A stretch of DNA of 64,000 bases from Carpediemonas membranifera BICM (GCA_019828565.1 JAHDYR010000062.1:297666-361665), one strand, 5' to 3'; shown: positions 3 through 60,120, counted from the first letter of the stretch. Translations and numbers: made by a program. The notes: generated by a model not told the origin, from the sequence alone.

Positions 3-3000
3 ACGACGGCAACGCAGCCCAGCAAGCCGCGCAAGCCTTTCAGACCATGCAGGATCTGCCAGGGTAGCCACTATGACTGGGAGTGCCCCCAGAAGAAGGG
101 TCGCCACGATCAGGGCGGGCTGCGCCCGCACCCGAAGAAGGTCGACCCCCGCTCGCGCGAGGCTAACTTGGCAGTCAGCGAAGAAGCCGTCGTCGTCCAG
201 GCCATGATAAATGGCCATGAATACAACGTCTATGTCGACACTGGAGCATCGATCTCCTTCATTGGGAGCCAGGCTGTTTATGAGTTGATCCCAAAAGCCG
301 ACACGAAGATCATCCAGCTCGATAGCGAGTTAATGGTGAGAACAGCTAATGCTACAGTCCGGTGCTCTAGTGCCGTGAGAATGCAGCTGTGTATACCGTC
401 CATCAGCGACTGGCCAGTAGAGTTCACAACTTTGTTCGTCATTCTCCCGGGCCTAAAGGATAAGGTCATCATGGGATGCAGCACGCTCCGAGAACTGGGA
501 CTCCTGAACGACGAAGAACTCCATATCAGATTTAAGCAGCCCGAAGAGGCAGAGAACGATACGGCCACGGAGCCCTTCACTCCAGAGTACATGGCCGCAC
601 TAGCAACGTCTGACAAGAGCGAACTGGAGAAGATCACGCTCGTTGATGACGACGATGGGCGAATCAAAGCGCTGTGCGAAGAGTTCAGCGAGATCTTCGA
701 CAGAGAGCTGCCCAGAGAAGGCAGCGCCCTGCCAAGAGCACGAGTACCGCTCGACGAGTCGGTGCCGTTCCACCGACACCTCAAAGCACGGCCCCTGAAG
801 CCGGGTGTGAGAGAGCGGGTCCAAGAGGAACTAAGAAGTCTCGAGAGCAAGGGCCTGATCCAAGACGCCTCGGGGCCGTATGCCTCTCCGGTGGTAGCAG
901 TCCTCACAGGACATAAGGGCTCGTCCAAGCTACGTCTGTGTGGAGACTACTCGGAGATTAACAAGGCGACGGTCCGCGACCGATATCCGCTCCCCGACAT
1001 CCGTTCCTTCATCACAGAAGCAGCAGGATCCACAAGATTCGGTTGCATGGACCTCAGAGAGGGGTATCACCAGATACTGATGGAGCCAGAGGACATACCG
1101 AAGACGGCTATCATCACACCAGATGGCTACAAGGAGTACACCCGCCTGCCCTTCGGCCTCACCAACGCGCCCGCACATTTCCAGAGAGCCATGGATTCTG
1201 CCTTTGCTCCACTGAGACAGCGGGGCGTGAGTGCCTATCTCGACGACATTCGAGTACACGCAGGGTCGACAGACGAGTTCATCGAGCGTCTTCGGGCGTC
1301 CTTCGAGACTTGTCGTCAATATAGACTCCGACTGAAAGCCGAGAAGTGCATCTTCGGGGCCCGGTCCGTTGAGATTGTGGGCTATATATGCGACAAGGAT
1401 GGATACAGACTGTCTCACCAACGTGTAGAAGCAGTTAAGAACATCAGACGTCCCAGAACACTGAAAGAGCTGCAGACAACGCTCGGATCGTTTAACTACG
1501 TCTCAAAGTTTGTGCACGACTCCTCTCGGATGCTTCGACCACTTCAGAACCTTAAGAAAGGTGGCAATAGGGACATTGAAGGTCGCTGGGATGCACGCTG
1601 CCAAGAAGCGTTCGACAACTTCAAGGAGAAGCTCTCGGCGACAACAAGCTTAGCCTTCCCGGACCTGACCAAGAAGTGGACGCTTCACACCGACGCCTCC
1701 AACGAAGGGTTCGGAGGTATGCTCACACAACGATCAGAGGACGGAGCCGAAGAGCTCGTCAGCCTCTTCTCGGGCACATTTACCGAGACGCAAAGCAGAT
1801 GGAGCACATATGAGCAGGAGCTCTACGCTATCCTGTACGCCGTGACGCGCCCGGACCTGACGGCCCTGTTCAAGATCCATCCGCACTTTAAGGTCATGTC
1901 GGATCACCGCAACCTAGTTTACCTCAATAACAAGAAGTATGTGAACGACAAGATCCTAAGGTGGTCCTTGATACTTTCGGATTACCATTTTACCGTTTCA
2001 CACGTCGCAGGATCGTCCAACGTTGTGGCTGATCATCTTTCCAGAATATCCAACACATTGCTGGTTGCTTTGGAGAATACAGCCAATAGCTTCACACAAC
2101 TGATCAAAGACACGCAAGAACGTGACTTCTCAGACGAGGAGCGCGAACAGTACAAGAACATTCAGCACGACGGGATAATCACGGTGGAAGGTATTCCCGT
2201 GATCCCGCAGGCCTCGGCAGAGCTTAAGCGACGTATACTGAAGCACGCTCATCGCTGGCATGAAGGCCGAGACAAGACAATACAGAAGGCCAAGGAGATT
2301 GGCATTTGGGCCGGCCTGGCGAGTGACGCTAGCAACACCGTCAAGACGTGCCCCGTCTGCGCAAAGACGCGGATTAGACAATACATCCAGGACAACAAGA
2401 TCTTCAGAACCACGAGCACGACGCCCTGGAGGTCCATCGCGATCGACACGATCGGTCCGATTAGCATGGACTCCGAAGGCAACCGATACATCTATGTCAT
2501 CACCGACTTATGCACACGGTACACCGAGCTTATGCCATCACACGCCAACGACGCAGAGAGCGCCACCAAGGCCCTGTGGCAGAGTGTCCTGAGACACGGT
2601 ATCCCGCAGTATATCAAGTCCGACAACGGCGTCGAATACACCAACAAGCTCGTGGAGGGCCTAGTAGAGACACTTAAGACCCACCACCAATATACCCTCC
2701 CCTACAGCCCGGAGTCCAACGGAGTTGTTGAACGTCGCAACGGAGAGGTCATGAGACACATTCGATGGATGGTGTTGGCAATGGACAGTTTTGATCATTG
2801 GTCTCACGTCTTGCCGCTAGCACAACACATTTTGAACAACACTACGCACTCAGATACGGGATTCTCCCCCAATGAGCTCATCTATGGCCGGCGCAACGAC
2901 ATCGGCCGGGTTCAGCTAGGCGACGTGATGACGTCGAATGAGCCGGAGGGGGAGGTAAGGAATGCCGCGGACTACCTGAGAGCGCTTCGTGATCTGCAAC

Positions 3001-52426: not shown

Positions 52427-55400
52427 TCACTGCGCCCACGGCGCCTTAGTATCCTTGATGGGCCTTGCCCTCATTAGCTTGATCTCGGCGTCCGGCCCCA
52501 CCATCAGCATCGAGGGCCAAACACCGTTCCTGTACACCCAGCCCGGGGCCCCAGGGTCGTCGCACGCGTACCCGTCATATGTATCAGTCACCACAAGGTC
52601 CTGCGCATACCGCGGGGTGACAGGTGTGCTCTCCTCACGCCGATTGAGCTGGGCAGCGTCGATGTCGACCCGCACTGAGTGATGCTGCCGGTCGAGTACG
52701 ACGCACCACCGCCCCTTGCCGCCCCTCAGCTCGGCGGGCTCTCTGTGACGGGGCAGGTAGGCCCGCACCATTGGCAGGGAAAGGTTTGACAGGGCAGTCT
52801 TGAGATCATCGGGGATGGCTTCAGTGGCGACGTACATGTCTTTGAGCACGGGCAGGCGGGGGACGGTGATGTAGTAGAGCCCTACGTTCGGGTCAGGTCG
52901 GTCAGAGAGCGGCCGGGACCCCATAAGTCTCTTGTGGAGCGACCGACTCTCCTGCCTCAGCTCGGACTTGGCCTTTGTAAATGTCATGGGCTCTGTAAAC
53001 CACGAGGGGAGGCCCGTGCCGGGTGTCCAGGGTGCGAGTGACCGATAGAGACCATACGAGAGGGCTGGCCGGGCGGTGAACTGGGCCTGGAGCTTGTGGT
53101 GGACGTAACAGAAGCCCAGGGCGACCCTGAACGACGTGTCTTCGGAGGGGAACCCCTGAGAGTCAACGCTCTTGCCCTTGGTCGGCCGCATGAGCATTGC
53201 CTTGGGGCCAAGAGAGTTAGCGAAGAAGTACCGAAGATGATGCACGGTCCAGCCCGGCGTCATGGGGTGGACGTGCTTGCATATCTGCCTCGACATGACA
53301 AAAGGGATGGTGTACTTGTCATCAACCTTTTCCTCGGGGATAAACTGCCCGTCGACGAAGTCAAGCGACGGATATCTGTCGAGGAAGCCGCATACCTCGG
53401 GTCTTTCGAACTCGACGACCGACTGCTGTGACCCTGGAAGGTCGCGTGCATCCTTGGGGCACGTCGAGCCCGGCGCCCAGCCCTGGAAAGCAGCCGAGTC
53501 GAGCACACGGTCAGTGCGGCCAGACTTGCCGATGCGGGACCGTATGAGGCAAATATTGAAGGCCATCATCGCAGTTTCTCTCATGCCGCGGACATTGAGT
53601 GTGAGCGGATTGCCCTTCTTGATGTTTGTGAGGACCACGTCGCCCGGGTAAAGCTGCTCGGCGATGGTGCCGCATACAAGGGTACAGTGCATACGCTCGA
53701 TGACCAGCGGTGTGACGGGCACGATAAAGGCGACGGGCGGTTGGTCTTCGTGGATGGTCTCTACGGCCGCAACGACGCCTTCGACAGCAGTGGTCTGGCC
53801 CTCGACGATGGGCAGCGCGCTGTCAAACTCGGCTGTGTCAATCGCACCCTCTGAATCGGTCTGCAGCTTGAGGATGTCACCGGGTTTGATTGGCAGGGGA
53901 GAGGAGATTTGGGCGATCGGATACGTAGTGCCCAGGCCGTTAGGGAGCACGATATCGGCATGCTGGGAGCTGAGTCCGCGGACAATGCATGTGGTGATGC
54001 TTTCCCGAGGCAACACGACCCATGCGAGCGGGTGGACGTCAGCCTTAACCGAGTACAGCTGGCCTGACACGAAACCAGCGGGGTTAGGCCTGGCAGAGGG
54101 CACAGGGGCGACCTCGAATGCCACTGCGAGGGAGGTGAGGTCGGAAACCTGCAGCGCCTCCGCAGTGGCTGCGACAGTGGGGCCGCGCCACATGACGATG
54201 ACGGGGCCGTCTGCTGTGGTGGTTCGGATGAAGGCGAGGCCGAGTCCGACTGCGCAATGGACTACGATGCCGCGGTGGACACCCTTGTCGGTGATACGGA
54301 GGCAGGCGCGGCGGGGCGGGTCGAACGTCGCCTGGCGATGCTGGTGCTTGGCCGGAGCAGGCTTGGCGGGCTGCGTCTGCTTCACGGGCTTGGCCTTCTT
54401 GGGCTTGACGAGCTGCACGTGGTGGACGATATGGTAGACCTCCCCTGACTCTCTTATGAAGAAGTGCCGGCCGTGCACCTGATACGAGAGCCTTGCACCC
54501 ACGTCAAACTGCTTGTCGTCAGACCTGAAGCTGACCACCGTCGGGCCACTGCGGGGTCCCACGGATCCAGTGACGATGTAGTGCACCCTCTGCCTGTCTT
54601 CCTTACCCACGTCAACCACAACACCCTCGAACTTGACGCCGTCCATGTCTGCCAGCTTCCACAGCACAACGGGTTCTCTGTGGTTGTACGAGCCGACTGT
54701 CGAGCCGTATCCGTCCCGCCCTATCCTGCGAACTTGGGCGCTTACCAGGGAGCCGGGCGGTATGGAGTCTGGGACAGAGACGCCGTTGATGCCGGGGAGG
54801 CCGTCCAGGGTGATGGGACGGCGGAGATAGAACCTGGTGGCGTCCGTGTCGTCGCGTTGGTGGCCCTTGGCGTTCGGCATGACAAAGACGATAGTCTCAG
54901 CCTCACCGGCCTCTGGGCGCCCGAGTACCTCGACAAGCTCGGCCTTTGAGGCGTATGGCAGGCCAGCCATCGGGGTGACACTGAGTGAGCATAGCACGCC
55001 GAGAGAGAGGGCGGGGGCGACCGCCGAGGGGACGGTGGCGAAGGCCGTGTACCAGGTCTCGGGCTCGGTCGAGTAGGGACCGATGGCACCGGTGCTGGGC
55101 AGCGGGGAAGTGGTGCAGGTGAACATGGCGACGTGGACTCCGCCCGCACGCTCGCGGCTGAGGAATCTGACCGCACCGATCGTCGTCTGGCCTGGGGAAC
55201 CGGGCTGGGCTGGGGCGCCCAGCGTCTGGACCGGCACGGGGGCCGGAGCTGGGGCAGGGGCAGCGGGCTGAGTGGTCGGCTCGGGGGTGGGCTCGGGCGT
55301 GACTTCGGCAGGCTCGGCGGCCTCCTCCTCGACCACCTCGGGTCGGACAGGCAGCGGAGGCGAGGGCATCATGGGCACCATCGGCTCGAGCTGCAGCTCG

Positions 55401-56011
55401 TCCATCTCGCCAAGCATCGGCGCTGCCATGAGATCGAGGCCGGGCGGCAGGTCCGGCATCTCGGGCTCGTCGGGAATGATCCCTGGCGGGGCTGGGGGCA
55501 TCGTAGGGAACGAGTCGATGGCTGAGAAGTCAATCATGCTGTCCATGCCTCCCATGTCGTGGCCGTGGAGGTTGCTCATGTCGAGCTCGAGCTCGGGACC
55601 GGGGACGTGGCTAAAGTTCATGCCGAGGCCGAACTCGCGGAAAAGCTCGGTGTCTGTGGTGTCCGGCAGTGTGGTGTCCGGAAGTGTGGTGTTAGGAAGT
55701 TCTGCGACATTGTCGGTGTCCTCAACAAGCTGCACACGGACCTTCATGCGGGTTGCGGGAGTATTGAGGTCGAGATCCTCGAGAACGAGCTCAAAGTCGC
55801 TTTCCGACGCGGTGGTAACCCAGAACTCTTCCGCAGGATCATAAATCTCCAGAAGGCCGATGGAAAAGCTTCTGGGATCGTTCGAAACGGGAGAGATTTC
55901 GAGTATGACATTCCTCAGGTCCTCCAGCGTCTCAGGACGATCAATCATCCGTAGGACGTTCTTTTTACCATCTGGCAAGATGAACGTGAAGGATCCCTTA
56001 AGCTTAGACAT
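52427..56011 (-). CDS. Large hypothetical protein (possible PB1-like N-terminus, Pro-rich linker, repeated beta-rich/OB-like units)
   Basis: 1194-aa ORF. Domain guesses come from pattern only. Confidence 0.75.
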   Translation of the reverse strand: MSKLKGSFTFILPDGKKNVLRMIDRPETLEDLRNVILEISPVSNDPRSFSIGLLEIYDPAEEFWVTTASESDFELVLEDLDLNTPATRMKVRVQLVEDTDNVAELPNTTLPDTTLPDTTDTELFREFGLGMNFSHVPGPELELDMSNLHGHDMGGMDSMIDFSAIDSFPTMPPAPPGIIPDEPEMPDLPPGLDLMAAPMLGEMDELQLEPMVPMMPSPPLPVRPEVVEEEAAEPAEVTPEPTPEPTTQPAAPAPAPAPVPVQTLGAPAQPGSPGQTTIGAVRFLSRERAGGVHVAMFTCTTSPLPSTGAIGPYSTEPETWYTAFATVPSAVAPALSLGVLCSLSVTPMAGLPYASKAELVEVLGRPEAGEAETIVFVMPNAKGHQRDDTDATRFYLRRPITLDGLPGINGVSVPDSIPPGSLVSAQVRRIGRDGYGSTVGSYNHREPVVLWKLADMDGVKFEGVVVDVGKEDRQRVHYIVTGSVGPRSGPTVVSFRSDDKQFDVGARLSYQVHGRHFFIRESGEVYHIVHHVQLVKPKKAKPVKQTQPAKPAPAKHQHRQATFDPPRRACLRITDKGVHRGIVVHCAVGLGLAFIRTTTADGPVIVMWRGPTVAATAEALQVSDLTSLAVAFEVAPVPSARPNPAGFVSGQLYSVKADVHPLAWVVLPRESITTCIVRGLSSQHADIVLPNGLGTTYPIAQISSPLPIKPGDILKLQTDSEGAIDTAEFDSALPIVEGQTTAVEGVVAAVETIHEDQPPVAFIVPVTPLVIERMHCTLVCGTIAEQLYPGDVVLTNIKKGNPLTLNVRGMRETAMMAFNICLIRSRIGKSGRTDRVLDSAAFQGWAPGSTCPKDARDLPGSQQSVVEFERPEVCGFLDRYPSLDFVDGQFIPEEKVDDKYTIPFVMSRQICKHVHPMTPGWTVHHLRYFFANSLGPKAMLMRPTKGKSVDSQGFPSEDTSFRVALGFCYVHHKLQAQFTARPALSYGLYRSLAPWTPGTGLPSWFTEPMTFTKAKSELRQESRSLHKRLMGSRPLSDRPDPNVGLYYITVPRLPVLKDMYVATEAIPDDLKTALSNLSLPMVRAYLPRHREPAELRGGKGRWCVVLDRQHHSVRVDIDAAQLNRREESTPVTPRYAQDLVVTDTYDGYACDDPGAPGWVYRNGVWPSMLMVGPDAEIKLMRARPIKDTKAPWAQ

Positions 56012-56315
56012 CGCTAAAGGGCTTCACGGCCAGTTGATTTCGAACTGAAGACAATTATGTAGACTCGGAGGTAAATACGTAAATGGCGGGAAATCTGAGA
56101 CTCGCATGGCACGGGGCATTTGACCAGCATGATTGGACTTCGTCGAGATCAGCGCCGCGGGGCAGGGCCTGTGGGTGTCCTTCTGCCCTCCCTACAAGCT
56201 ACGTTGCAAGGGTCTTCATGGCATGGGTGGTAAGGACAACCACTGGACTTGTCAGTCGTCAGTCGTTTATGAACACTCTCAACATATCACCGTTGTATCA
56301 TGTAGCACAACGCCC

Positions 56316-57977
56316 TCAGCTCTGGCCACATAGTCCTACCGACGCTGCCATCACCTCGTATGAGTCCCGGTCCCTGTTGGCCGACTCCCGCACCAGCACC
56401 AGCCCCAGCCGGCCCAGCTCGGCCAGGGACTCGTAAATTTGGTCCTGGGGCACGCCGTTCTCAGTCATGCGGGCTATGAGGGGCAGGGCAGTATCCCTGT
56501 CCTTGACCCCGCCCAGGGTGAGGCAATGCCAGGCCGTGGCGACGCAGGGGAACTGACGGAAGCCGAGGACGCCGGGCACCTCGGACCTACGGCCGGCGGG
56601 GGCGTAGAGCTCGGCCACGACGCTCTCTGTGGGCAGCCCGTCGGTAACAGGCGGGGCGGGCAGGAGCAGCAGCCGGGCGACAGTGGTGGCATGCCGCAGG
56701 ATGGGGGTCAGACACTCGGCAAGGTGCTTCCGGGAGGCGCGACCATCGGAATCGCCGCTGAGCACCGCCTCGACCTTGCTCTGCACTGTGTGAGGCAGGA
56801 GCAGCCGTGCGTCCTGGTAGAACTCGGCCACGGTCGCCCTGAGATCATCAACGGGGACCATGCCGGCAGACCCGGACACGAGTGCCCCCACGTCCCCTGC
56901 TGGGTCCGACAGGAGGTAGTAGAAGACGTCTGGGGCATCAAACTTCTCCTTGAGGCGGGGATAGGCTCTGAGGACTCCCGACACGACGGGCCTGAGCAGG
57001 TCGACCAGTCGGCCCGCGTTCCTCAGTCGGCCAACGCTGGACTCGACCTCCGCCTTGGCACACGGGCACCCGGCCTGCAGACCCTGCCCGTGGTCGCGGT
57101 CGGTGTACGGGGCAGGCTCGGCGTCGAATGAAGGCGGGGCCTGGAAGCTGAAGACGACGTCCAGGCGGCGGATCAGGCCGAAGGTAAGCAGACGGCGGAG
57201 CTTGCTGATGATGGGGGCGCCCTGCTCGTACAGCTTGACGAGCTCGGTAACCTGGCGGTGTGAGACCTTGGCGTATGGGCTCAGATTGGCCAAGAGATCG
57301 CCCAGGGCTGAGGAAGAAACGACCGGGGCTGGTATGCAGCACTGGATGACCCAGCTCGGCCTCTGCTGTGTCCTGAGATGCTCTGGGACGACCGTGACCA
57401 CTCTCAGCGGCAGGGTCTTGATGACATCGTAGTAAAGCTCCAAGGACGCGACATGCGGGTCGACCACAATGACCACAGCGAGCGGGTCCATCCTACTAGC
57501 GGAATCCTGGTCGCTGAACCATGCCCCGGGCCGCACAGCCTGCCTGCCCTTGACGAGGGCGTGGAGGTGGGCGGGTGACTCGCACTGGCGGCCGTCGAGA
57601 CCAAGAGCGGTCGCCATGGTGCTGTATACAGACTCCATGGTGTACTGTGGCGAGAGTACGGCCGAGTGTGGCACGTGGCGGCGGGTGGCGTCGGCGAGGG
57701 CCTGGCAGTGAGCAGTGTGAAATGACATGACGACGGAGGCCGATCGGGCCGGGAGATCAGTGGGCACAGACTGCGCTGAGGTCATTGGGAGCAGCTTTTG
57801 GACGGTGGTTGCCAGGGATGCGGCGAGCTCGATGATTTGAACTGAAATCAGCGACTCAACGGGAGCTACGACCTCATCGACCATAGAGCCGATTGCACTC
57901 ATGTGTTTCGCAAAGATGGCGTCATTAAACTTCCATTCGATGCTGTGTGCTCTTTCGAGCTCAGCGTCAAGGTTCAT
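56316..57977 (-). CDS. ORC3: Divergent origin recognition complex subunit 3-like protein
   Basis: Collinear resemblance to ORC3 blocks as I recall them: AVVIVVDPHVASLELYYDVIKTL, YAKVSHRQVTELVKLY, PCVATAW and ESLAELGRLGLV. Confidence 0.55.
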   Translation of the reverse strand: MNLDAELERAHSIEWKFNDAIFAKHMSAIGSMVDEVVAPVESLISVQIIELAASLATTVQKLLPMTSAQSVPTDLPARSASVVMSFHTAHCQALADATRRHVPHSAVLSPQYTMESVYSTMATALGLDGRQCESPAHLHALVKGRQAVRPGAWFSDQDSASRMDPLAVVIVVDPHVASLELYYDVIKTLPLRVVTVVPEHLRTQQRPSWVIQCCIPAPVVSSSALGDLLANLSPYAKVSHRQVTELVKLYEQGAPIISKLRRLLTFGLIRRLDVVFSFQAPPSFDAEPAPYTDRDHGQGLQAGCPCAKAEVESSVGRLRNAGRLVDLLRPVVSGVLRAYPRLKEKFDAPDVFYYLLSDPAGDVGALVSGSAGMVPVDDLRATVAEFYQDARLLLPHTVQSKVEAVLSGDSDGRASRKHLAECLTPILRHATTVARLLLLPAPPVTDGLPTESVVAELYAPAGRRSEVPGVLGFRQFPCVATAWHCLTLGGVKDRDTALPLIARMTENGVPQDQIYESLAELGRLGLVLVRESANRDRDSYEVMAASVGLCGQS

Positions 57978-58037
57978 TGCTGGCGACTCTCCAACTCAAG
58001 CTCTGCAGCGCCACCAACAAACCACAGACCCGGAGCT

Positions 58038-59075
58038 CTACAACCCGTTTATGATGTCTACCTTGACCCCTGAGAGTTTGATCTCGTCCCGCCCCTTTTT
58101 GGCAACGCGCACCTTAGGCTTCGGAGAAGGAGGCTTCGGCCGCCGCGACAAGAAGTCCATAGCCGCGGGTACTGGGAGCTTGGCCGGCGTGCCCTGTGGC
58201 TTCGGCCGCTCCTCATCAGCCACCTCCTCAGCCTGCACCGTGGATCGCCCAGACTTCGCAGTCATGGCCCGGATGATCCTTTCCGCAGCAGACTGGGGCG
58301 GGTTGATTAATAGATCGTACTCTGGTCTCTTGGGCAGGGTCTTGTCCAGCACAGTCACGTCCAGTGGATCGGATGGGTCAATTGTGCGGCCAAACGCCAC
58401 AGTGTGCTCCTTGACATCGCCTAGCAGCCTGGTCGCCCGAGCCCGCTCGACTGGGGTGACTGGGATGAAGTCGAGTATGTCGAGGGCGGGGAAGGCGTCA
58501 ATAACTGCAAGGCGGTATGGTCGGGCGGGGGTGAACGGGTTTCCCATGAGGACGAGCGTCCGGAGACTGCTGAGGTGGCGGATCGCATCGAGAGTCTCCT
58601 CGAAGTCCGTGAGCTGGTTGTCCTCGAGGTTGAGCTCCTCGAGGAACTTCATGTGGCGGATACTGCTGCCACGGAGGGAAGAGATGCGGTTCTTTTGTAC
58701 AAATAGGCCCCGTAACCTGCGGAGCGTGTCTAGACCGGTGAGTTCGCTGATCTTGTTGTTGTTGAGGTATAGAACTTCGAGTTTGACGAACGGCTCGAAG
58801 TCTGCGATGCGGGTGATACCACATCCTTTCATATATAGCTCAAGGACATCACTTGGAAGCCCGGTGATCCTTCCTATTGGATCGGAGGGAACATCGGGTT
58901 CCGGTTCTGGCTCCTGCTCCGGTTCTGATTCTTGATTGGATGCTACGGATTCTTCTTCATTGTGAGTATTCTCTTCATCTTCTTGATTATCGTTGACATT
59001 TTCAATTACGCCCTCCTGCGGGGGAACAGGCTCGTTGGCTGGATCGGCCATATTGTGCAGTTTAACAATGTGCAT
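58038..59075 (-). CDS. SDS22-like leucine-rich repeat protein with LRRcap
   Basis: LEVLYLNNNKI, LEELNLEDNQL and LVLMGNPF...YRLAVI..FPALDILD. Confidence 0.9.
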   Translation of the reverse strand: MHIVKLHNMADPANEPVPPQEGVIENVNDNQEDEENTHNEEESVASNQESEPEQEPEPEPDVPSDPIGRITGLPSDVLELYMKGCGITRIADFEPFVKLEVLYLNNNKISELTGLDTLRRLRGLFVQKNRISSLRGSSIRHMKFLEELNLEDNQLTDFEETLDAIRHLSSLRTLVLMGNPFTPARPYRLAVIDAFPALDILDFIPVTPVERARATRLLGDVKEHTVAFGRTIDPSDPLDVTVLDKTLPKRPEYDLLINPPQSAAERIIRAMTAKSGRSTVQAEEVADEERPKPQGTPAKLPVPAAMDFLSRRPKPPSPKPKVRVAKKGRDEIKLSGVKVDIINGL

Positions 59076-59686
59076 TTTATGCGCGGGTCATTGTGGTATT
59101 TAGAGGTTTATGTGGAGGATTCATGTAAAGGTGACTTTAGCTGTCGACCCCCCTGGGATGAACTCCAGAGGACTGAACAGGTTCAGTCTGACGGCCCACC
59201 TGTCGTACACCAGAAGGGTAGCGGACATGAGGGCGTCGGCGATGGTAAGAGCGACGGTTCTGGGTGGGATCTTGGTTCTCGCTCCAGTAGAAACTAGGAA
59301 TGCGGCAGCTTTGGACGCGCACATTGGGATGTTGGAGCCATCCGGCCGCGGATTGATCACAGTTGGTTTGACGCGCTAGTGCTTGTACTGTTCCTCCTTG
59401 AACTTGACTTCCTTGTCCACCGGCATGGTGTTACCGACCGTGACATCGATCACCAGTGGGGTATCTTTAGACTCAACAATTCTAATCCTGCGCAGCACAG
59501 TCATGATAAGTCGCTACTATAGGCGTATGTACTCGTCTGTGGTCCCAATGCCCCGCTTTCCATTGCTCCAGTTAGCGTCCACTCCACCGGGTGGCCTTTG
59601 TTCAAGTCACTTCAGTCTCAGCCCTTTGCCGTCAGACATCGCGTGTGTCTAGCGGCCAGTCATCCCTCTGATCAGCCCGACCCGCC

Positions 59687-60120
59687 TCACTGGGGCCACA
59701 GCAGGGCAAGGAGCCCCTTGCTCCACTGGTCGGTTGGAACCACAGTTGACTGCTCTGCTCCGGGTAGCCTGGACGCTATCTCCACAGCGAGGAGGTGCTT
59801 GCACATGAACTCCGTCTTGGTCTCGACGACTTGCTGGGCGTGGGCGCGACACGAGCATGAGTTGGGAAGGATGACGTGGGATGAATTCGCCGTGCTGGCA
59901 ACTGTGTGGTAGTAGCACCCGTTAGCAGTGGATATCCGGGACACAAGGCCGCTCTCGATGATTTGCAGGGACTCTTTAAGAGATTGTGGGAAAAGCAGAT
60001 TCAACCTGGATAAAACGCAGCATTTGAAGGTACATACGTTGTCATAGTCTCAATCGTGATGTCCTTATCGAGTTCAATGCTCTGTAGAGCGTGTTCGAAG
60101 ATTACCTCGAACATGCCCAT
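59687..60120 (-). CDS. ZSWIM7: SWIM zinc-finger Shu-complex protein SWS1/ZSWIM7 (2 exons)
   Basis: CSC...MCKHLLAV SWIM motif. A 32-nt intron (60006-60037, GTATGT..CAG) joins the two ORFs in frame. Confidence 0.8.

Follow-up and report, generated by a model that had tools for sequence, protein, structure and literature searches.

The window analysed here is a stretch of 64,000 nucleotides from the genome of Carpediemonas membranifera, and the features of the part studied are collected in Table 1. A sequence-only reading of this DNA had proposed that a reading frame of 553 residues encodes a cryptic and highly divergent relative of ORC3, which belongs to the origin recognition complex (ORC), the assembly that defines the places at which DNA replication begins. 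We confirmed the reading frame, which runs from ATG to stop on the minus strand, and all the sequence blocks that had been quoted were found in its translation. These are AVVIVVDP at residues 167-174 with LELYYDVI following at 179-186, AKVSHRQVTELVKLY at 236-250, and towards the C-terminus PCVATAWHC (477-485) and LAELGRLGLV (518-527). In addition, AVVIVVDPHVASLELYYDVI is similar to the 'VVVILKDMESF...VLQDFI' region of human ORC3, a resemblance that we regard as a lead only.

Table 1. Features at and around the ORC3-like gene, in positions of the window
Feature	Position	Strand	Basis
Complete CDS, ORC3-like protein	56316-57977	-	ORF list: ATG to stop, 553 aa, stop codon included
Alternative start M26	57900-57902	-	Start of the paralogue in its NCBI model
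N-terminal helical extension, residues 3-59 (predicted)	57801-57971	-	AlphaFold2 secondary structure; least constrained part of the protein
AAA+-like domain (RecA-like plus lid), residues ~60-300, predicted, catalytically dead	57078-57800	-	ORC3_N clusters; Atlas model; no Walker motifs
Walker-B-like strand AVVIVVDPH, residues 166-174	57456-57482	-	Regular-expression scan and predicted strand 167-172
All-helical middle region, residues ~301-460 (predicted)	56598-57077	-	Helices 305-457 in both AlphaFold2 runs
C-terminal winged-helix domain, residues ~461-553 (predicted)	56319-56597	-	Pfam TrmB; secondary structure; Atlas model
DNA common to both copies	56300-57997	.	CDS plus ~16-20 nt per side
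Leucine-rich-repeat gene	58038-59075	-	Pfam LRR_4/LRR_9
1194-aa orphan ORF	52427-56011	-	No Pfam match

The gene is preceded, at a distance of 60 nt, by a leucine-rich-repeat gene and followed, after about 300 nt, by an orphan reading frame, all three being on the minus strand. Low-complexity sequence rich in Pro, Ala and Glu occurs close to the N-terminus of the orphan. Just upstream of the leucine-rich-repeat gene, at window positions 59092-59500, we find a dispersed repeat that is present in at least 40 copies in the assembly, on many contigs and at 95-99% identity. Most of these copies are shortened internally, at points that vary, but share one terminal piece of 34 nt; in this the repeat resembles non-autonomous transposable elements. 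No Rfam family matches the repeat. In the public run records described below its depth is 300-1240, as against about 17 over the flanking genes.

Two copies of the gene

The closest protein in the databases is J8273_5407 from C. membranifera itself, a hypothetical protein of 528 aa that is 97% identical to the translated reading frame, without indels, and was its sole relative in a word-index search of 5.8 billion clustered proteins; the lineage supposed in the sequence-only reading was therefore correct. It is the product of a second copy of the gene, located on another contig (C26:832127-833785) of the same assembly, which comprises 24.2 Mb in 69 contigs. The NCBI model of this paralogue begins at the residue corresponding to M26 of the 553-aa reading frame, and the choice between M1 and M26 as the true start codon remains undecided. 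Nowhere in the gene do the copies diverge more densely than in codons 1-25 (M1 to H25; window 57900-57977), where 9 nucleotides and 3 amino acids differ.

The two copies are 96.6% identical in DNA. They differ at 56 positions, of which 36 are synonymous and 20 non-synonymous, with 0 indels, giving a dN of 0.0165, a dS of 0.0887 and a dN/dS of 0.185; the deficit of non-synonymous changes against neutrality has a binomial p of 1.9e-9. Since a second copy exists with this ratio and this deficit, we conclude that the reading frame is a real gene and not a chance ORF, and that the pair is under purifying selection. Among the 19 amino-acid differences, six fall within residues 1-60. The synonymous divergence is unevenly spread, with a dS of 0.205 in the first 150 codons compared to about 0.05 in the remainder, a pattern that could have arisen by gene conversion across the 3' three quarters of the gene.

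When 18 kb of the window were compared with 20 kb of C26 by blastn, a single match of 1699 nt at 96.1% was obtained, and the genes adjoining the ORC3-like gene were not found duplicated at C26. Because the similarity ends only some 16-20 nt beyond the coding sequence, the neighbours are unduplicated and the first 150 codons have four times the dS of the rest, the arrangement suggests duplication of a single gene, possibly mRNA-mediated, or gene conversion afterwards.

Contigs from two public run records cover the ORC3-like gene. Every one of the 27 variant letters in them is the letter of the paralogue, so that both copies were present in the sequenced sample. The two run records (2017 and 2021) gave identical contigs and identical depths over window positions 55000-60000, and are therefore probably a single data set filed twice. 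Their contigs sum to 10.2 Mb against a genome of 24.2 Mb, the read depth drops four- to five-fold across the intergenic stretch 56033-56275, and there is a seven-fold difference in depth among neighbouring genes. On these grounds the run records look more like a transcriptome than like DNA, and the figures fit such an origin. The records are not filed as RNA and contigs cannot show expression; transcription of the gene is not shown by them.

Predicted domains and the lack of catalytic motifs

Two sources of predicted structure were available for the protein, and they differ in what can be taken from them. AlphaFold2, run on an alignment of two sequences, reached a pLDDT of only 34 over the full length and of 46 in a run on residues 296-553. 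The models are poor because the two near-identical copies provide no alignment depth, and only their secondary structure was used. A Foldseek search of the PDB with the full-length AlphaFold2 model returned unrelated chains at a TM of about 0.1, which is uninformative and was not counted against ORC3. The AlphaFold and Foldseek comparison that had been put forward as a check on the sequence-only reading yielded a secondary structure of low confidence; the models were too poor for the fold comparison and its TM values are meaningless.

The second source, the ESMFold model of the ESM Atlas, has a pLDDT of 0.60 and a pTM of 0.52. In this model residues 1-300 align with AAA_22 / Orc1-like AAA+ clusters at a TM of 0.50-0.55 by both normalisations, over 202-238 residues, and residues 316-551 align with an archaeal Cdc6 lid plus winged-helix (WHD) cluster at a TM of 0.47 by target. 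Absence of an AAA+-like plus winged-helix architecture would have refuted the earlier proposal; what the Atlas model presents is an AAA+ fold, after which come a lid and a winged helix resembling those of Cdc6. In this prediction the N-terminal part has the RecA-like or AAA+-like fold expected of ORC3, with the reservations that the mean pLDDT is 0.60 and that the AlphaFold2 model, at a pLDDT of 34, offers no confirmation.

In the AlphaFold2 secondary structure, which is of low confidence, a long helix occupies residues 3-59; an N-terminal helix had also been named in the sequence-only reading. Further on it contains a beta-alpha-beta core, with predicted strands at residues 167-172, 192-196, 209-214 and 272-277. 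A regular-expression scan of the whole protein found no [AG]xxxxGK[ST], no GK[ST] and no hhhhD[DE]. A single hhhhD motif is present, VIVVDP at residue 169, and in this Walker-B-like strand D-P replaces D-E/D. The residues of ATP binding and hydrolysis are thus absent, there being no Walker A and no canonical Walker B.

About 150 residues in the middle of the protein are predicted to be all-helical, and it is here, at residues ~366-436, that the AlphaFold2 pLDDT is highest (58-78). We infer that this region corresponds in position to the insertion domain of ORC3, a large helical domain that holds the ORC6-binding site and an MCM2 tether (PMC12759066). Neither its fold nor the presence of ORC6-binding helices could be assessed. 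The ORC3 clusters matched in the Atlas search described below carry this domain (PF19675, ORC3_ins).

At the C-terminus, the Pfam TrmB winged helix is matched at residues 507-533 below threshold (E = 0.068 for this copy and 0.015 for the paralogue), and at E = 0.0095 when the C-terminal piece is searched in isolation. Residues 477-544 show a helix-helix-helix-strand-strand pattern in two AlphaFold2 runs. Each of these lines is weak alone, as is the match to the Cdc6 lid plus winged-helix cluster, but they are mutually consistent, and their agreement leads us to take the expectation of a C-terminal winged helix as met, in prediction.

Similarity to ORC3

Searches by sequence did not identify the protein. 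Pfam gave no match to ORC3_N (PF07034) or to ORC_WH_C (PF18137) at E <= 10 with the whole protein, with four separate pieces of it or with the paralogue. Among PDB chain sequences we found nothing relevant to the whole protein, to residues 1-300, to a profile of residues 296-553 or to the winged-helix piece. The paralogue alone was recovered both by exhaustive HMMER against 1.84 billion representatives and by a profile word search at E <= 10, and a scan of metagenome contigs gave no relative. Six-frame Pfam searches of the genome with ORC3_N and ORC_WH_C produced no first-pass candidates and are uninformative. The missing ORC3_N match reflects a limit of detection and is not a structural feature. 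It remains the case that no alignment-based method and no confident structure confirms the assignment to ORC3.

The assignment comes from a feature search of the ESM Atlas. With the whole protein as query, ORC3 accounted for 27 of the 30 nearest clusters; the best had a score of 0.96 with 208-211 of 256 features in common, and the ORC3 clusters came from arthropods, basidiomycetes and apicomplexans. ORC5 (0.81) and ORC4 (0.78) came next. With residues 1-300 alone, ORC3_N clusters were retrieved at 0.91-0.96 and with 188-213 common features, the top cluster reaching 0.96 with 213/256; ascomycetes, plants, chordates, basidiomycetes and apicomplexans were represented among them. By the calibration of this search, about one shuffled protein in 100 attains 0.95, and at least 170 common features are typical of members of the same family. 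The calibration has not been measured for parts of proteins, and the search yields neither an alignment nor an E-value.

With ORC3 families nearest to the whole protein as well as to residues 1-300, the suggestion of a divergent ORC3-like gene is supported, and unrelated best matches, which would have overturned it, did not occur. That the closest relatives are ORC3 and not other ORC/Cdc6 paralogues is an expectation met by embedding similarity only, without an alignment or a tree. We consider it likely, with some room left for doubt, that the gene is a homologue of ORC3, namely an extremely diverged orthologue.

The kind of protein is a known one (ORC3), and this one is outside all current profile definitions, shorter and duplicated. 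Like ORC3 (PF07034 ORC3_N, PF19675 ORC3_ins, PF18137 ORC_WH_C), to which it is nearest by language-model features, it is predicted to run from an AAA+-like domain through a helical region to a winged helix; the order described for ORC3 is AAA+, insertion, winged helix (PMC12759066, PMC5291709). It also shares the lack of motifs for ATP binding or hydrolysis; Orc2 and Orc3 have been termed 'AAA+-like', being without hydrolysis residues (PMC5291709). Unlike ORC3, it is detected by none of the Pfam ORC3 profiles, has 553 aa where the proteins of model organisms have 616-734 aa (711 aa in human, Q9UBD5; 616 aa in yeast, P54790), and is encoded by two dispersed copies. Among metamonads Orc3 has been listed for Trichomonas only (PMC8516963, supplement). 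The Orc3 of Trichomonas vaginalis (TVAG_256270, 441 aa; same supplement) is likewise reduced and likewise unrecognised by the ORC3_N profile; however, it still matches ORC_WH_C, whereas the Carpediemonas protein matches neither.

Proposed role of the protein and the reported absence of ORC

Carpediemonas species have been described as the only known eukaryotes without ORC and Cdc6, and Dmc1-dependent, origin-independent replication has been proposed for them (Salas-Leiva et al. 2021; PMC8516963). In that work Orc1-6 and Cdc6 were found absent in searches with Pfam (including PF07034 and PF18137), with eggNOG-derived and metamonad-specific HMMs, by tBLASTn and by six-frame HMMER. Our own null results by sequence search agree with this. 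The absence was still cited as fact in November 2025 (PMC12759066), and our literature search found no paper that revisits it. The novelty anticipated in the sequence-only reading, which hinged on the species having no annotated ORC3, stands: the gene is listed as 'hypothetical protein', and according to the paper on the genome Orc1-6 and Cdc6 are absent.

Candidate partners in the genome were considered and rejected. The sole match to Cdc6_C (PF09079; E = 0.24, C5:218028-218147) is spurious and falls in an ORF of 377 aa (locus positions 1333-2466, plus strand) that by eye looks like a serpin. Seven AAA_16 matches, considered as possible Orc5/Orc4 partners, are by eye RFC, proteasome Rpt, RarA, katanin/Vps4-type ATPase and guanylate kinase.

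We favour, with less assurance than the homology itself, a diverged ORC3 orthologue that also acts in a diverged ORC; ORC assembly and origin licensing are here inferred. The protein would then be a catalytically inactive, AAA+-like scaffold subunit of the complex. It would have kept the ORC3 layout, in which a RecA-like domain and lid without ATPase motifs are followed by a helical region and then by the winged helix. If the ORC structures known from other eukaryotes are a guide, the protein may lie between Orc5-like and Orc2-like subunits in an open ring encircling origin DNA, and might from that position contribute to the loading of MCM2-7. As an ORC3 it would be expected to form a lobe with ORC2, to contact ORC5 and to bind ORC6.

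A true descendant of ORC3 could also have ceased to work in ORC and persist as a relic with another job, the other subunits being truly lost. Such a job may be in the binding of chromatin or heterochromatin, at the centrosome or in cytokinesis, or in the recombination-based replication proposed for Carpediemonas. ORC subunits are indeed known in non-replicative roles (discussed in PMC8516963), and the many HMM strategies of the same paper found no Orc1-6 or Cdc6. Our six-frame Pfam search of the genome with ORC2, ORC4_C, ORC5_C and ORC5_lid had no candidates in its first pass, and, with the Cdc6_C match rejected, no ORC2, ORC4, ORC5 or Cdc6 candidate is at hand. This last result says little, since the first pass gave no ORC-family candidate at all and missing partners therefore carry little information. 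The published silence is weakened too: the ORC3-like gene was itself missed by those HMM searches, and their failure to find the other subunits thus carries little weight. Furthermore, ORC3 is a scaffold without an activity of its own in the solved ORC structures (PMC5291709), which makes a stand-alone role less natural. We regard a relic of this kind as unlikely, and do not rule it out.

The protein may instead have another origin, as a further ORC/Cdc6 paralogue or a STAND/AAA_22-type ATPase whose AAA+ plus winged-helix sequence has degenerated and merely resembles ORC3 to a language model. By structure, the Atlas model does have generic neighbours (AAA_22/TniB, NB-ARC, ClpX and Orc1-like AAA), with no ORC3 cluster among them, and ORC5 and ORC4 clusters occur in the feature lists too, at about 0.8 (ORC4 at 0.78-0.81). 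In the predicted N-terminal fold and in the Cdc6-type lid plus winged helix, the protein is also similar to archaeal Orc1/Cdc6 and to bacterial AAA_22/Orc1-like ATPases. Those proteins, however, are active enzymes with the Walker A and B motifs that it lacks, and their feature similarity is far lower (<=0.83). Indeed, no family other than ORC3 exceeds 0.83 for residues 1-300, with 117-138 features in common, which leaves a large gap to the ORC3 values given above, and this gap is seen in the whole protein and in the N-terminal half alike. A helical region between AAA+ and winged helix is, in addition, a trait of ORC3 (PMC12759066, PMC5291709). An origin outside ORC3 is thus distinctly unlikely in our view.

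Least credible, and in our judgement very unlikely, is a lineage-specific orphan of unrelated fold that the embedding search, together with an ESMFold model of modest quality, would have wrongly assigned to ORC3: no database searched holds a sequence relative beyond the species, AlphaFold2 was unable to fold the protein and the Atlas search itself describes its matches as leads to test, but a chance first match of at least 0.95 arises for only about 1 in 100 shuffled proteins, a chance landing on the very family already named from the sequence is much less likely still, and two independent indications of fold, AAA+ (TM 0.50-0.55) and winged helix (Pfam and secondary structure), fit ORC3.

For a diverged ORC3 orthologue, the question is how far it bears on the complex as a whole. 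The sequence-only reading had held that ORC would be divergent rather than lost. For one diverged subunit this is supported; a single subunit does not show a whole ORC. The reported loss of ORC may in part be a failure of detection. That Carpediemonas keeps a complete and extremely diverged ORC, made up of a duplicated Orc3 together with Orc5-, Orc4-, Orc2- and Orc1/Cdc6-like proteins invisible to HMMs, is a tentative proposal to which we would give somewhat less than even chances. If it is true, the status of 'only eukaryote without ORC and Cdc6' would be a detection artefact, origin-independent and recombination-driven replication would be unnecessary, and other fornicates listed without Orc3 may conceal one.

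The gene is of interest for its bearing on whether, as has been claimed, replication proceeds without ORC in a free-living eukaryote, and as a conserved, duplicated ORC3-like gene it offers a concrete handle for testing the reported absence. More generally, where profile HMMs suggest that a fast-evolving protist lacks a protein, language-model and structure-based searches should be used as a second check. If the protein works alone, it would be an unusual example of a scaffold subunit that has survived the loss of the ORC to which it belonged; if it is part of a diverged ORC, a prominent exception to universal eukaryotic origin licensing would disappear.
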